NCBI GenBank assembly: GCA_964247055.1
Contig: OZ176057.1
Span: 6,200,001 to 6,264,000, forward strand
Direction: 5' to 3'
DNA from: Paragordius varius
Taxonomy: Eukaryota > Animalia > Nematomorpha
DNA length: 64,000 bases
Position 1 is the first letter of the stretch. Each line of letters starts with the position of its first letter. Shown in pieces: positions 18,101-60,540 of this stretch. The notes beneath the pieces are model-generated. The model was given only the letters and a program-made list of their open reading frames with translations. It searched no databases and was not told the DNA's origin. The position numbers and the translations under genes were made by a program.

Positions 18101-21040
18101 GCATATTGTAATTTTTATCTTTTGTAAAATATTAATTATAAAATTTTATTAATAAAGTTTAAACACACATAACCAAAATATAATTTAAAAGATAAAAATA
18201 TTTATTGATTATAATATTTAAATAAATTTATAATTGTTTTCATTTTCTAGGGGTTTTCTTTGCATACATTCCAACAAAATATGTGAAGAAAAATTATAAT
18301 AATTTTTTAGATTTTTTTCCCTTCTCTCTTCGCAAAGTCTTGCAATTTTATTATGTTGCTCTAGAGGGGTACTACACCGGGGTTTTTTATCATATTGATG
18401 TTTAATCTCATGAAAAAAACATTCAATGGGATTCAGTTGTGGCGAATATGGAGGTAAATAAACTATTTTATTCCTTAGCTCACCTAACACCGCGGCTTTG
18501 TGAATAGGTGCATTATCGCAAACTATTATTGAACTTTCAGGAATTCTTGTTAAACATTCCGTCAAAAAAATTCGAAAATCATCGCCTCTAAAGGCGCCTT
18601 CTTTTGTTCTGTAATTAATAACTCCCTGACAACCAATCATACATATCAATGAAACATTTTTTCCTAAAATAAATTCAAATTTTACCTTTGTTAAATCCCT
18701 CTACAATAGGAGATTTACCCTTTGGAGCTCTACCCCATATATTTTTAAGTTTCAAACTGAAGCCTGACTCATCAATAAAAAAAACTTTTTCCTGTGGAAT
18801 ATCTTTCACCAATCTGGCATAATTATAACGCTTTTCTATATTCTCTGGGGTGTTTCGTTCCCGAGGTTGTAAAATACACCTCTTTCGAGTAATTTCTGAA
18901 TCCGAGAGAATTTTGTAAATAGTTGTTCTGCATACTTTAATATGGTCTGGTATTTGTTTCATTATTTCATCGATTGTTAATTCACAATCATTGTTTATTA
19001 ATCTTTTGACAGCATCTATTATTTCTGGATTTCTGAATTTGTTACGCCGACCAGATTTATTTCTATCAGTAGAATTCCCAAGAATTATTTTTCTTCTTAA
19101 TATATTTATAGATGTTAAGGACATATCAAAATAATCCAAAAAATAATTTGAGGGTTTTTCCAAATTTTTGGGATCAAAAAATAATTTTTTAGCTCTATCT
19201 ATTTTTTCCTTATTCCAAAAATTATGTTCTAAAATTTAAAAATATTAATACTTTTATGTTTTATTTTTTCACGAGATAATTCATTTTCATTCAATGGAAC
19301 ATCCAAATCAGATACTACGAATTGTTATTTTTAAATACTTGAAGACTCTTCACTTGTATCCGATTCAAAAGTATAAACTGAGGGAGCTATGTTTTCCTTT
19401 AATATTGGATTTTGTTCTCAATTTTTATTTTTTAATATAAACCTTCAAGTACACTAGCTGCCGAGCAAAGAAGAAATAATGGGTTATCGTTGATATTCAT
19501 AATTTTTTAAAATAACTCTAGATTTATGATTTATTTCTTTATATATATAGAGATTAAATGGACATCTGCTTGGGTTTTCTTATATATTTTAAGTGCATGT
19601 TAAAAACCCCTAGAAAATGAAAACATATATTAAACTTGGTTATCATAAATTACATGAGCATGTTGTAGATAAAATGTTCAAGAATAATATTTTGCAACAT
19701 CTTTTAATTATAAATTAAAAATTCTTACACTAAATAGGCTATTATTATTTTAAGGCTTAAAAATGCGCATGTTGAAAGTTGACATATCAAACATCAAAAC
19801 AATTAAAAAAAAATTATAATCATTTAAATAAAAATTTCTGACAATTCTATATAGACATGACTGTATAACATCTATAATTTTTATGTTTATCAATCTATAT
19901 TTGTAATTAGTGGTTAAATTGTGAGACATATTTGAATTGAAAATCAATAGATATTCTTTAAATTCTAAAATTAATAATATTGGACAACAGTTTTGTCCTT
20001 TATTAACTTTGGATGTTATACAGTAGCGTATTGAGTAAAACAATATTAGTCCATAGAAGAATAAAAAAATGTTTTTTTACAAAAACAAGCCTACTTGTAT
20101 ATTCACATAACTATAATAATATTCCCTTGTTTTTTTTTAAAAAAAACTTAATTTTATTCTATTATGGGCTAATAATGTTTTATCTGTATAAAATCACATT
20201 TCAATTTCAGTTAAATATCAGCAATATACAATTTAGATTGTTAAATATCCTAGAAATATTTTAAATTTCCCACATTTTAAAGTTCCATAAACGAAATTCG
20301 ATGAAAACAAAACTTTAAAATATTTTTAAAAGACATAATTTTTATTATTTTTCCCATATAATTTATCTTACAAATGTAAAATATATAGAGTAGCGTATGG
20401 CATAAAACATTTTTAGTTAATAAAAGAATAAAAAAATGTTTTTTAAAATAACAACATTCTTTCATTAGGGACTAATTTGTTTTATATCATACGCCACTGC
20501 AAATTAATGTGCTACCAATTTACATTTTTATTTCTACTTTGCAATTTAAAATAATGAGTGCAGATAACAAACAATATTTTAAAAATGTACAATGCTTATT
20601 TAAGTAAAGGTGATGTCTTTATGTATTTTACGTTTTGTCTATGGTATATTTTTAATTTTATAGTCAAAAATATTGCTATATATTCTAATTTATACCTGTG
20701 TCACTATAAGCCTTCTACTGTCCGGACATAGAGATTCATAATAAATGTCTAAAATAATTGGGGTTGTATATTCAATTTTTGCATCAGAGCTACTTTCATC
20801 GGCCTTTACACCAGAAGATTTTAAGGAACTTTCGTTAAATGTTTGCTTTTTCGTTTCAGTTTTAACTGTAAAATTCGTTTTAGCTGGTGTTTTTATCTTG
20901 GTATTATTAATGGTTTCTGATGAAGCAATATTAGATATTCTTTTATGCTGACCTGCGGATATATTTTCTTTGGGGATTAAAGAGTTATTTTGGCCCGCGA
21001 CTAATGTTAAACCAACAAACAAAGTTATCAAAATTATCAT
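12674..21040 (-). CDS. GILT: GILT-like (gamma-interferon-inducible lysosomal thiol reductase) protein (exons 21040-20696, 17166-17077, 16549-16469, 16058-15960, 13544-13398, 13129-13064, 12709-12674)
   Basis: Signal peptide MIILITLFVGLTLVAG, active site YYESLCPDS (CXXS), then PYGK, FKCHHGNEECVGN, and YVPLVTINE. Six phase-0 GT-AG introns give a stop-free ORF. Confidence 0.92.
13580..13857. mobile_element. MITE family C copy in GILT intron 4
   Basis: Both arms recognisable. Confidence 0.8.
13874..15089. mobile_element. ~1.2-kb hairpin (foldback/MITE) element with CACTGTG-type ends next to (TA)n, in GILT intron 4
   Basis: The two arms (~550 bp each) are reverse complements; CACAGTG end followed by a long (TA)n tract. 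Confidence 0.88.
15090..15137. repeat. (TA)n microsatellite; others at ~8585-8610, 16360-16383, 23506-23533 and 62250-62295
   Basis: Read directly. Confidence 0.95.
16600..17030. mobile_element. MITE family C remnant with a tandemly duplicated right half, GILT intron 2
   Basis: tatacatctctatctc..GAATT...GTCTTTATATTTTTCCG..TTTTTACTGTA occurs at ~16670-16790 and ~16915-17030. Confidence 0.7.
17222..17497. mobile_element. MITE family C copy in GILT intron 1
   Basis: Both arms recognisable. Confidence 0.82.
17903..19863 (-). mobile_element. IS630-Tc1-mariner DNA transposon, family A, apparently intact, in GILT intron 1
   Basis: TA duplication (17901-02, 19864-65). Ends are CAGTCATGTCTATATAGAATTGTCAGAAATT and its reverse complement. 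Long imperfect TIRs of ~260-350 bp. Encodes a transposase. Confidence 0.95.
18218..19500 (-). CDS. DD30E IS630/Tc1-like transposase, 395 aa after removing four micro-introns (exons 19500-19443, 19416-19339, 19314-19252, 19228-18686, 18663-18218)
   Basis: Motifs FIDESGF, VCDNAPIH, LPPYSPQLNPIECFF and an HTH-like region (TIDEI...VCRTTIYKIL). Exons of 58+78+63+543+446 = 1188 nt give a stop-free ORF. The introns (26, 24, 23, 22 nt) are all GT-AG and phase 1. Confidence 0.85.
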
Positions 21041-55255: not shown

Positions 55256-56407
55256 AATGACAGTAGTAGTAGGAAGTATAGTGTATAATCACATGATATA
55301 AATTCGAAAAAATAAATATTTTTAATTTAAAATAAAAAATTTTAATTTAAAATTGAATAGATTTTAAAGATATTTAATGATAAAAAATTTAAACGGACAA
55401 AAAAAATTTATTTGTATTAAAAAAAATTTTTTTTTATATAATTGTGAAAAAGCGGGACATTTAAAAACGTAGCAGGAAGCGGGACAAAGTGTGAAAAAGC
55501 GGGACTGTCCCGCCAAAAGCGGGACGTCTGGTCACCTTATATATACATTTAACGTTCTAAATAACTTGTTCGATTTTCATATTTTTATAAAGTAACATAA
55601 AGGCAACACATATAAATATATTATTAGGTATAGCGTTCTAAATAATTTGTTCGATTGTTGCATTTTTATATTCACACAAAAGTTACATCGTTTAAACATA
55701 TTGAAATGTTATATGCTGTAACGTTCTAAATTATTTGTTCGATTGTCACATTTATATATATTAACGCAAAACACATCATCTATATATATTAAAAAAATGC
55801 TATAATTGCTGTTTGATACCCTTATGCGAATTTTTGGGGGAATAACAATGTCTTTATTCAAAAAACATATTTTAAAGTTGGAGGAAAAACTGAACAGAAG
55901 TTAACATTGACAATAATATATTCACAACAACGGAATTAACTAAAAGCGTATTTTTGTATGTGGCTTAGTTAGAATTATAGAGATATATTTTTTAAATAAT
56001 TACACCCAATCAAACACAACTCAAATGAACTTACTGACAGCTAAAAACAATAGTAATCATAAAGCCTGGAAAATTGATCAAGCAATATAATACAATCAAA
56101 CTGGTCAGGTAACTAAAAATTTAAAATTTGAATAATTTATAGGCTTTAATTTAAATAAAATTTTATCTGTTTATATAAAATTCATTAGCCAATGCGATAT
56201 ACATTTTTGCATTTTGCAATAAAAATAGCCATATTAATTATCTATCACAGATAAAGCAAAGTAAAACCATACAAGTACAATGAAAAAATAATGACGTTTG
56301 AAATACAAAACAATTACAACACATCAATCATTTTATAAAAATAAAAACCTTATTTTCAAAATGTAAAACATTATCCAACAATCGTCTATAACATTCATTG
56401 TGAAATA

Positions 56408-59176
56408 CAGTCATGTAGACTTTATATTGTTAAAGATTTACTTTTTCGTTAATTGGGTATTAATATTTGGTAAAGAATATAAAAACAAGAGCAATATGGT
56501 ATTACCATATCACATTCTTTAAAAAAATTAAAAGAAGTGTGGGGGAAGGGCGTCAGAAATCTTTGGTAAAAAATGAAAATCTTTAATATTGAGGGGAATG
56601 GTAATATTTTTGTTAATTTTTTGCAAAATTTTATATATTAATTTTTTTGATAAAATTTTTATTTAACACCTAGATTCGAATGGGGTATTTAAATATACCT
56701 TAGACTAAATTTGAGTTAGGATTTTTTAATAACTAGTGAAAGAAACGGTCCCAATTTAAATTTATGCTTCTTTTCTAATAAAAATTATATATAAATATGC
56801 CAAAATATTATAAAATTTTGTTTTGAAAAAAAAGTTCCATGTCAAACAACTTCGACGCCATTTTTATTTTACAAAATGTTTGCAAAATGTCGTGTTCATT
56901 TAGTGTTAAGGGTAAAATTAAAGATAATTTTTTATTTAAATCACATCTAACCTTGATAGAAATAGAAAAAGCGATTTATTTTGTATTCTTTTTCAATTTT
57001 ACCATTGCACACATGTCACATTAAATTTTTACCTTTTGTTTTAGCTTAAAAATGAATGTGTTGTATCCAAGTGTTAAACAAAACTAACTTAAATATAGAT
57101 TTTATTAAAAAAATATTTATTATAATTTTTTTAATAGGATATCACAATAATCAAACAAACATACAACGGATAAATAATGAATTGTGTGTATATATAAGGG
57201 AAAACATAGGAAATGAATATGGATTATATAGCGTTTATAAAAAAATATTATCGAACTGAATGCGTTTCATCCTAAAATGCTCTATTTTGGGAAATTTAAA
57301 ATTCAATCATATATATACCAGTTTACCACTATTTAACCCTATTGAATGTTTTTTTCTATAATAATTGTTATAAAAAAAGCAAGATATATCTGGAAATTAT
57401 TTTTATATCGTACTGTGCGATCAAAAAAAAAATAAATCGTCTCTGATACTTACAATAAATGATGTTTAAAATTGTTTTCATTTTTCAACCTTAGTTTTTT
57501 TAAAGCAACATCAATTAAAACTCTTTTTGAAAAATCATAATAATTTTGAAGAGATTTTGTTTTTCTTTCGTCGCACAATCTTTTGATTCTGCAATATTGT
57601 TCCCCGAATGTAGTCCATCTTGGTTTTTTTTTATAATAAAATTTTAATTCGTGAAAAAAACATTCAATAGGATTGAGTTAGGGGCGATTAAGGTGGTAAA
57701 TATATAAGCTTGTTCCTTAAATTACCCAAAATAGAACATTTATGTATGGGTGCGTTGTCGCAAATGACAAACGCATCTTGTGGTAACATGGCCAAAGACT
57801 CCTCCAAAAATGGCTTAAAATTCTCGCCATTGAACGCTCCCTGTTTGATGCTGTAATTAACAACACCCTGTATTCCAATCATACACAACAAAGAGACGTT
57901 TTTACCTAAAATAAAATAAAGATATACCTTTATTGAAGCCCTTTACGATAGGTGCCTGTCCTGACGGTGCCCGGCCAAATATATTTTTTGCTATCAAGGA
58001 AAACCCCAACTCATCTAAATAATAGATTTCGTCCAAGGGTATACCGTTCACAAGACAGGCATACTCAAATCGTTTTTGAATTACCAACGAGGAATTGCGC
58101 TGTTGAGGTTCCATAATACACCTTTTGCGCGTGTATTTAAATATTTTATATAAGGTTTTTTTGGATATTTTGGATTCTGTGGGTAATTTTATTGAGAATC
58201 TCATCGACAGTCAATTCACAATCACTATCGAGGATTGTTTTGACCTGCCCGACTAGACCTTCATTGCATTTCGTTTTCCTACCCTTTTTCAATGGCTCTT
58301 TCTCTCTATTCCCAGAGTCATGCTTCGTCTCATAGCATTTATGGAACTTATAGACATGTCTAAATCATCTACAAAATGACGATACGATAATTCGTGATTT
58401 CTGGGATTCCCGAAAATTTTATAGGCCTTAGACTTTTTTTCATCTAACCAAAAATTATATTCTAAAATTAACAAAAACGGTTTTCCTTTTTCCTCTACCG
58501 TTTAATGAAGTTGTCATATTTTCATTCCCGATCTCATTAACACCTAAATTCTAAATGAAAAAAAAAACCATCGTTGCCAGGGACAAAATTTTGTATGGGT
58601 CTTATATTTTCGTCAACATAATCTGAATCTAACATTATAAAGGCAAAAAAAACCATCAAGGACACCAGGACAAGTGTCTACTATCAATTCATTCCCGCCA
58701 ATCTCATTAACACCTAAATTCTAAATGAAAAAAAAACCATCGTTGCCAGGAACAAAATTTTGTGTGGGTCTTATATTTTCGTCTACATAATCTGAATCTA
58801 ACATTATAAAGGAAAAAAATACCCGCAATACCAGGGTTACATCCTAACGAAATTGGATCAAATTGATTTAATATAGCATCTATCGTAAAAATCCCTTTTA
58901 TCGTTCCCATATCAAAACAAAAAAAAATTATAATTGAGATAAAAATTACGATTTTCCTAATTCTTTTATACAATAATTTTAAGTGAAGGGTTAGTAGTTG
59001 GTGTATTTTCATTTTTTACCAAAGATTTCCGACGCCTTTCCACTTCATTTTTTACTTTATTAAAGAATATGATATGGTAATACCATATTGCTCTTGTTTT
59101 TATATTCTTTACCAAATATTAATACCCAATTAACGAAAAGAGGTAAATCTTTAACAATATAAAGTCTACATGAATG
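56408..59176 (-). mobile_element. IS630-Tc1-mariner DNA transposon, family B, degenerate, inserted into a tandem-array unit
   Basis: ~170-bp TIRs starting CAGTCATGTAGACTTTATATTGTTAAAGATTTAC. TA duplication, confirmed against the empty site in a sister unit (atcgtaaaaTAtagtggtttt near 47250). Confidence 0.92.
57450..58880 (-). pseudogene. Family B transposase pseudogene with micro-introns and several frameshifts
   Basis: YLDELGF, ICDNAPIH, LPP..., NPIECFF remnants. Frameshifts near 58310, 58175 and 57680, plus an in-frame stop after LPP. 22-nt intron at 57906-57927. Confidence 0.88.
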
Positions 59177-59364
59177 TATACTGGTTTTAGAATTACTCAC
59201 TTAATTTTAATTGGATTAGCATCATATATAAAATTGAACTGATTAATGGAATTATGTAGCGTGCTGTCAAAATTTTTCAAATACAAATTATTATTAAGTG
59301 TAAAATCAAAAAAATAAACTTGTCAGTCGTTTTATCAATGAATTAATAACATTAAACCACACAT

Positions 59365-60540
59365 TACTAAATAATGTATTATATGGTTGATTTTGGCCTT
59401 TCCGCCCTTCGTTCAAGCAACCTTGCTCCAGACATTGTTGGAACACCCCTTTATATAGCCTACAACATGCTCAGTCGAGACACCTATGATTAAAAAGTGG
59501 GCATTTGGTTCTTGGAAACTGTAATAATTAAATTACTTGAAGGCAACAACCCTCCAAACATTGACATTTAGCGGAATCACGTAATTATACTATTTATCAT
59601 TTAAAATTGGACCTTTATTTTGTTAGATACTACATAAAATCATCAAAACAAGAATCCCAACCCTGCCCAAATTAATTTCCACAGTTTTCACTGATTTTTA
59701 CATGACTTTATGCGCAAACAGGCTACCGATAGATGGTCAGCCTATGAATTTATGCATATACACATAATTGATTTCTTTTTTATTGGGTTACCTACTATAA
59801 GATTTTACGGTAAACTATATAAAAATATAATTTTTTTGGTCATACCTTTTTTATAACATTCAATCTCTCCGAATTGAGAGCGCATAGTTAATTCTATCAC
59901 AAATCAATTCCAATTTAAATCTGCAAAAAATTAATACCCATATGTGTGTTGAATTAATCCACCAACGCAAATGTATAGTTTAAGTTACAAAAATTGTTTT
60001 TTCAAGTATTAGCGGGAAATCATTCCACAAAACACATATACTTTAATCTATTAAATAATTCTAAAAAAAGGCTTCCAAAAACATTATTTGTTTATATAGT
60101 TTACCGTAAAAGTTATAGGTAATTTAATGAAACAATTAGATGTGCATACCTGCATCAAGTCATTGGCCGACCATCGATCGGTGGCCTCTTTGCGCAAAGA
60201 GTTTTGTAAAAAATCGGTGAAAGCTCTCGAAATAGATTTCGGTAGGGTGCCTATTTTGATAATTTTATGTGATATCTAACTGAAAATGAAGGTGGAATTT
60301 AAAGATAAATCTAATTTCCAAACTCCACTTTATGCCGTATGGAGGGTTTCCTACAACTAATTTGATTAGTATTATTCCAAAGGACCAAATGCACTTTGAA
60401 ATCATAAGAGTCTCGACAGAGCATGTCGTAGACACGTAAAATGGCGTTCCGACAATGTCTGAAGTAAAATTGATTGAACTGAAGCAGGAAATACCAAAGT
60501 CAACCATATCCATATAATAGATTAAATAAACGCTTTTTTC
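59365..60540. pseudogene. Palindromic kinase cassette 4
   Basis: Same arms (+ arm from ~59373; ORF track 60265..60513 -). Confidence 0.8.

Follow-up and report, generated by a model that had tools for sequence, protein, structure and literature searches.

A probable translated micro-exon leader, varying by frame-neutral cassettes, in front of the transposase of a Tc1/IS630-type transposon in the horsehair worm Paragordius varius

A transposon copy in the genome of the horsehair worm Paragordius varius (110.5 Mb, about 26% GC) carries, at the 5' end of its transposase gene, a run of exon-like segments of about 60 nt separated by intron-like segments of only 24-25 nt, and the question raised by this locus is whether such an array is a coding leader of the transposase and how the number of its repeated units changes. 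The copy lies in a 64,000-nt stretch of DNA (hereafter the window; contig OZ176057.1, positions 6,200,001 to 6,264,000) and belongs to an element, termed here family B, that gives >200 matches in its own genome, with dozens of copies. In the window the element and the downstream part of its gene are arranged as follows.

56408-59176, minus strand: whole element, 2769 bp, a dead copy of the Tc1/IS630-type DNA transposon 'family B'
59005-59176: terminal inverted repeat on the gene's 5' side, containing a direct-repeat motif
57928-58461, minus strand: main exon H, with the putative DNA-binding region and the first catalytic D, aligned to the intact copy L002 at 97.7% identity
57906-57927, minus strand: intron of 22 nt, GT-AG, phase 1, splitting the DDE_3 domain
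57450-57905, minus strand: last exon, DDE_3 catalytic core
56408-56580: terminal inverted repeat on the gene's 3' side

The termini of the window element, read directly, are flanked by TA on either side (56406-56407 and 59177-59178), as are those of copies L002 and L005, and the two terminal repeats are 86-96% complementary, a repeat search placing the inverted ends at ~170 bp. The leader sits 5' within the transposase gene and the rest of the gene follows downstream, the last exon being the one that matches the Pfam family DDE_3 (PF13358; E=2.3e-15 on the L002 last exon and E=2.5e-21 on the frame of a sister family). Judged by DDE_3, the TA duplication and the inverted ends, family B belongs to the Tc1/IS630-type (ITm) superfamily, and it resembles Tc1/mariner-IS630 elements in these three respects as well as in the direct repeats inside its inverted ends and in having a single transposase gene. 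The spacing from the second D to the E in the L002 translation is 30 residues (L002:2407-2856; window 57450-57905) whilst that of Tc1 proper (DD34E) is 34, so that family B is not Tc1 proper, and it further differs from the Tc1-like branch in that its gene is interrupted 4 to 12 times, by introns of 22-26 nt that are all in phase 1. A Pfam scan of the first leader exon (E0) and of exon H returned no family; the scans covered E0 and the two long exons, the remaining exons of 19-20 residues being too short. Exon H is a candidate DNA-binding region by its position and its basic cluster, and public homologues align over this part. Among public proteins the closest are DDE_3 proteins of another horsehair worm, Gordionus sp., uncharacterised and 34-39% identical, and the public protein collection contained nothing from P. 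varius for these transposase families, its best hit being 34% identical. P0001, the homologue from Gordionus, has its start at an internal methionine and is thus uninformative on the leader.

The copy in the window has two cassettes and is dead. Relative to L002 its exon H has gained 2 nt near 58307 and 1 nt near 58190, with an additional in-frame loss of 9 nt near 58135, and its last exon contains a nonsense codon (57690-57688) and a 1-nt insertion near 57680. Rfam and tRNA scans of the window gave no matches.

Two further repeats were seen in and beside the element. About 390 bp (56661-57051; element positions 2130-2520) of the ~1 kb non-coding 3' part also occurs alone, in both orientations, in clusters and beside other copies, for example three times at G000 C1:6956067-6958496, and could be either a small repeat in its own right or a nested element. 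Adjoining the element, 59381-60509 consists of nested inverted repeats (arms 59381-59453/60437-60509, 59501-59547/60346-60392, 59622-59657/60245-60280 and 59803-59839/60075-60111) and looks like a foldback or palindromic element of ~1.1 kb.

The leader itself reads on the minus strand, from E0 towards exon H, as listed below.

58823-58910, minus strand: leader exon E0, 88 nt, ATG at 58910-58908, open for 29 codons, ending in phase 1
58798-58822, minus strand: micro-intron 1, 25 nt, GT-AG, T-rich
58738-58797, minus strand: leader exon A, first copy, 60 nt, phase 1 to 1
58714-58737, minus strand: micro-intron 2, 24 nt, GT-AG
58654-58713, minus strand: leader exon B, 60 nt, phase 1 to 1, homologous to B' over its first 26 nt
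58629-58653, minus strand: micro-intron 3, 25 nt, GT-AG, of the type of micro-intron 1
58569-58628, minus strand: leader exon A, second copy, 60 nt, with 3 differences from the first copy, 2 of them synonymous
58544-58568, minus strand: micro-intron 4, 25 nt, GT-AG
58481-58543, minus strand: leader exon B', 63 nt, phase 1, ending in a basic cluster
58462-58480, minus strand: remnant of intron 5, 19 nt, with 3 donor bases deleted, which nearly all other copies have as a 22-nt GT-AG intron

The presence of this micro-exon/micro-intron leader in the window is confirmed. A preliminary description, made from the window alone, had proposed four GT-AG segments (58822-58798, 58737-58714, 58653-58629 and 58568-58544; 25, 24, 25 and 25 nt) that bound exons of 60, 60 and 60 nt in an open phase-1 frame, and these segments, the exon lengths and the peptides that it quoted were reproduced, the other two spliced frames being full of stops; in the window translation E0 joins the first micro-exon in frame. 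Its 3' boundary required correction, since the fifth intron had been drawn as 25 nt with a GG donor (58486-58462) after a last leader exon of 57 nt, whereas other copies have a 22-nt GT-AG intron here, of which the window keeps a 19-nt remnant, and by homology to those copies the last leader exon is 63 nt long (58543-58481). With three donor bases missing, intron 5 of the window copy cannot be spliced as it would be in the other copies. The proposed tandem duplication of a two-exon unit of ~170 bp holds (58559-58659 against 58728-58828, at a spacing of 169 and with 93% identity). An ~85-bp lattice, taken as a duplication, does not: the period-84 array has 59% matches, and an older 85-bp duplication of a single exon, by which A would be related to B, was rejected because the two exons are not significantly alike (p=0.47). 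The 85-bp period thus reflects similar exon sizes and T-rich introns.

Two intact copies of family B were found, and in both the frame stays open. L002 and L003 lie ~40 kb apart on contig 4 and are 100% identical over 3249 bp whilst their flanks do not align, which identifies them as two recent insertions. Each contains an intact coding sequence of 1653 nt, a 550-codon frame of 13 exons that stays open through all 12 introns, and all 12 of these introns are GT-AG, in phase 1 and 22-24 nt long. The leader of both holds exon A five times and exon B four times. A third five-cassette copy, on contig 9, is 98% identical and broken. The youngest and only intact copies of family B are those with the largest array. 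The acidic N-terminal extension that had been anticipated from the window is borne out in the five-cassette form, where the leader has a pI of 4.05, a net charge of about -27 and a GRAVY of -0.66 and the core a pI of 9.4 (computed by script from the spliced translation, from composition only).

Segmentation of 28 independent 5' regions of family B from the same genome, in which ~80 copies bear a leader, defined how the leader varies. One cassette comprises an intron, exon A, an intron and exon B, amounting to 162-170 bp of DNA and 114-120 nt of coding sequence, and it is in phase 1 at both its start and its end and contributes 3n coding bases, the units being 60+60 or 60+54 nt. Across copies the leader exons other than E0 measure 51-63 nt and the introns 22-26 nt, the last leader intron being the 22-nt GT-AG form in nearly all segmented copies, and E0 falls into length classes of 88, 91 and 94 nt. 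Copies with one, two, three or five cassettes coexist in this one genome. Two cassettes, as in the window, is the majority state; five-cassette copies number only three; and one-cassette copies occur in both old and young subfamilies, the young ones being L030-L032. This spread of cassette counts over old and young copies indicates that cassettes have been both gained and lost. In the five-cassette lineage exon B is 54 nt and the last exon A 51 nt, these changes and those between the length classes of E0 being multiples of three, and the in-frame changes of -6, -9 and -3 belong to the most recently moved lineage. Poly-T slippage makes the introns vary in length. Older copies show ~8 differences between their two A exons and young copies almost none, a pattern that suggests recurrent unequal exchange or gene conversion. 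Growth of the extension by duplication of symmetric micro-exons inside a mobile element, as the preliminary description had put it, is supported by the series of one, two, three and five cassettes together with the intact copies.

As to how the unit was first made, exon B matches exon B' over its first 26 nt (p=2e-4) and is followed by an intron of the type that follows E0, so that the unit arose by a tandem duplication which extended from close to the 3' end of E0 into B'. A chimeric origin of exon B, from the beginning of B' joined to the end of E0, was considered; its B' part is supported (p=2e-4) and its E0 part is not (p=0.76), the sole hint of an E0 contribution to exon B being the intron type common to the two.

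Two sister families provide an independent view of the leader. One, family A, has a transposase in the same window, and the other is designated the 54% family after the identity of its exon H to that of family B.

18218-19500, minus strand: family A transposase, exon H 47% identical to that of family B
G000 C1:12494141: 54% family, copy L061
G000 C4:12552154: 54% family, copy L062
G000 C5:10539674: 54% family, copy L063

The element of the 54% family is ~2.2 kb long with inverted ends of ~217 bp and an intact gene, and its copies are 98.4-99.3% alike with different flanks, the family being young. Its leader exons are 100, 156 and 60 nt, all in phase 1, whilst the family A leader has an ATG exon of 58 nt and two further exons (78 and 63 nt), its introns measuring 26, 24 and 23 nt, again all in phase 1. 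Both sister leaders are open, have introns of 23-26 nt and contain a methionine only in E0. E0 of family B resembles E0 of the 54% family (p about 8e-4), whereas between families the middle and last leader exons showed no significant sequence similarity, so that only E0 and the architecture are conserved; the acidity of the leader is conserved across all three families though its sequence is not. Frame conservation extends beyond the intact copies, since old, diverged copies of family B and both sister families keep an open, all-phase-1 leader.

Putative introns of this size are also present in genes of the host. In beta-tubulin (L046, G000 C4:4964674-4967916) a 25-nt GT-AG segment must be removed to keep the frame, and in HSP70 (L079, G000 C4:12481068-12485117) the same is true of GT-AG segments of 28 and 23 nt, so that conservation of the proteins suggests that the host removes introns of 23, 25 and 28 nt. 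These host micro-introns have GT-AG ends and T-rich interiors and fall in the size class of the transposon introns, although most introns of the two host genes are ~40-186 nt long whereas those of the transposons are all 22-26 nt. Within the transposase, the 22-nt intron splits DDE_3 at profile position 36/37 and the Pfam match resumes at 37, whilst in the 54% family the domain is continuous across the homologous intron site; there a 24-nt catalytic-domain intron is in frame by chance, which yields an uninterrupted frame of 342 codons. From these features of sequence we infer that the leader introns are actually spliced. In all three transposase families every intron seen, of which a gene has 4 to 12, is in phase 1, the catalytic-domain one included; this is more uniform than chance.

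Whether the leader is translated, and under what constraint, was assessed from frame, indels and substitutions. In within-exon shuffles the probability that a leader is open by chance was 7.5e-4 for a one-cassette copy, 5e-5 for an old two-cassette copy and 2e-4 for the non-redundant exons of the five-cassette copy, and it was 2.5e-4 for the 54% family and 3.7e-3 for family A, the off-frames of the tested leaders containing 5-24 stops, and those of family B 8-15. Of the 10 leader-exon indels common to at least two loci, 6 were multiples of three, the in-frame -9 included, against 5 of 28 in non-coding parts of the element, and exons B and B' contain four two-locus indels that are not multiples of three. 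No selection at the amino-acid level was detected on the leader exons, where 26% of shared substitutions and 23% of singletons were synonymous with 22% expected, a synonymous fraction no different from that of non-coding controls. The same test applied to exon H gave 48% synonymous among shared variants against 23% among singletons (p=2e-4), which establishes that the test has power. The leader frame is kept and the leader sequence looks close to neutral, which fits a disordered acidic tail; judged by its composition only, the leader is probably disordered. Since its exons lack amino-acid-level selection, growth of the leader may be neutral too. Ahead of its presumed recognition helix exon H lacks an in-frame ATG, in the sister families too, and the start of the transposase must consequently be further upstream. 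Taken together, the open frames, the indels, the start codon and the sister families make a leader translated from E0 the best reading, and we infer that the E0 ATG, which has a purine at -3 and G at +4, is the start codon.

The reading that we consider probable, then, is that of a translated phase-1 micro-exon leader beginning at E0, which grows and shrinks by frame-neutral cassettes in front of the transposase. Translation would start at the E0 ATG and pass through A, B, A and B' into the DNA-binding exon, the leader introns would be spliceosomal introns of 22-26 nt of the class used by the host, and the frame would be kept because any stop or frameshift would abolish the transposase encoded downstream. 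As a cassette runs from phase 1 to phase 1 and adds 3n bases, unequal recombination or slippage could change the count harmlessly, and copies with one, two, three and five cassettes would result. This has to be weighed against the view that the introns are real but lie in a 5' untranslated region, the family B transposase starting at the methionine of exon B'. Such a start would make use of an in-frame ATG just before the basic cluster, from which a shorter product is conceivable, and would sit well with leader exons that show no amino-acid-level selection; an untranslated leader, however, need not be open, yet the leader is open in old and young copies of family B and in two sister families, the only methionine of the sister leaders is the one in E0, E0 is conserved between family B and the 54% family, and an upstream in-frame ATG in the context of that of E0 is normally used by scanning ribosomes. 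A start at the methionine inside exon B' is thus unlikely, and the untranslated leader as a whole we hold to be distinctly improbable.

Less credible still, to the point of being very hard to sustain, is that the array is a non-coding minisatellite within the transposon, its exon-intron appearance an AT-rich coincidence and its changes in copy number mere repeat instability. Its copy number is indeed variable as in a minisatellite, its introns show poly-T slippage and its substitutions look neutral, but open frames would then have arisen with chances of 5e-5 to 4e-3 per family, all boundaries in the intact copy are GT-AG, the length changes of -6, -9 and -3 in the most recently moved lineage are in frame, and the transposase would be left without any other start codon. 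A different kind of proposal makes the cassette array adaptive and tunable, altering the activity, localisation or host interactions of the transposase, or its isoforms by exon skipping, with the five-cassette form having spread for that reason. The youngest and only intact copies do carry the largest array, and acidity is conserved in three families where sequence is not; against this, there are only three five-cassette copies, no selection on the leader sequence was detected and young one-cassette copies exist (L030-L032), and we regard an adaptive array as unlikely. Its more specific form, a tunable acidic cassette module through which the element regulates its own transposase, as an electrostatic DNA mimic that damps the basic DNA-binding domain or by cassette-skipping isoforms, and whose five-cassette expansion was adaptive, we likewise think doubtful. 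As to function under the preferred reading, a translated and near-neutral leader, it is a guess that the acidic leader damps the basic DNA-binding domain electrostatically, or that it has no role at all.

We know of no described Tc1 element with an acidic leader of 74-220 residues before its DNA-binding region, and in the literature searched neither such a transposase leader nor nematomorph micro-introns were described, a single preprint naming horsehair worms as a test clade only. The micro-exon genes of schistosomes are host genes for secreted proteins and have symmetric exons of mostly 6-36 nt, ordinary long introns and alternative splicing. Family B shares with them runs of short symmetric exons and a variable, poorly constrained segment, and differs in its exons of 51-63 nt, its tiny introns and its gene, which is that of a transposase. 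Disordered regions are known to grow modularly when phase-symmetric exons are duplicated in tandem (Schad, Kalmar and Tompa, 2013; PMC3632108), and the family B leader resembles those cases in its 1-1 exons, its acidic composition of low hydropathy and its internal tandem duplication. It differs from them in lying inside a mobile element, in introns ~100 times shorter than human ones, in a unit of two exons and two introns that occupies only 162-170 bp and in copy-number states that coexist as paralogous copies in one genome. What is unusual in family B is thus an apparently active transposon that combines introns of 22-26 nt with several copy-number states side by side.

Family B is a compact natural example of a protein segment that grows and shrinks via phase-symmetric exons and very short introns. 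Three transposon families independently support the removal of introns of 22-26 nt, near the lower limit known for animals, and the intact five-cassette copy, with 12 micro-introns in 1.9 kb, could serve as a reporter for the splicing of ultrashort introns. Whether an acidic leader modulates a Tc1-type transposase could be tested with the same copy as well.
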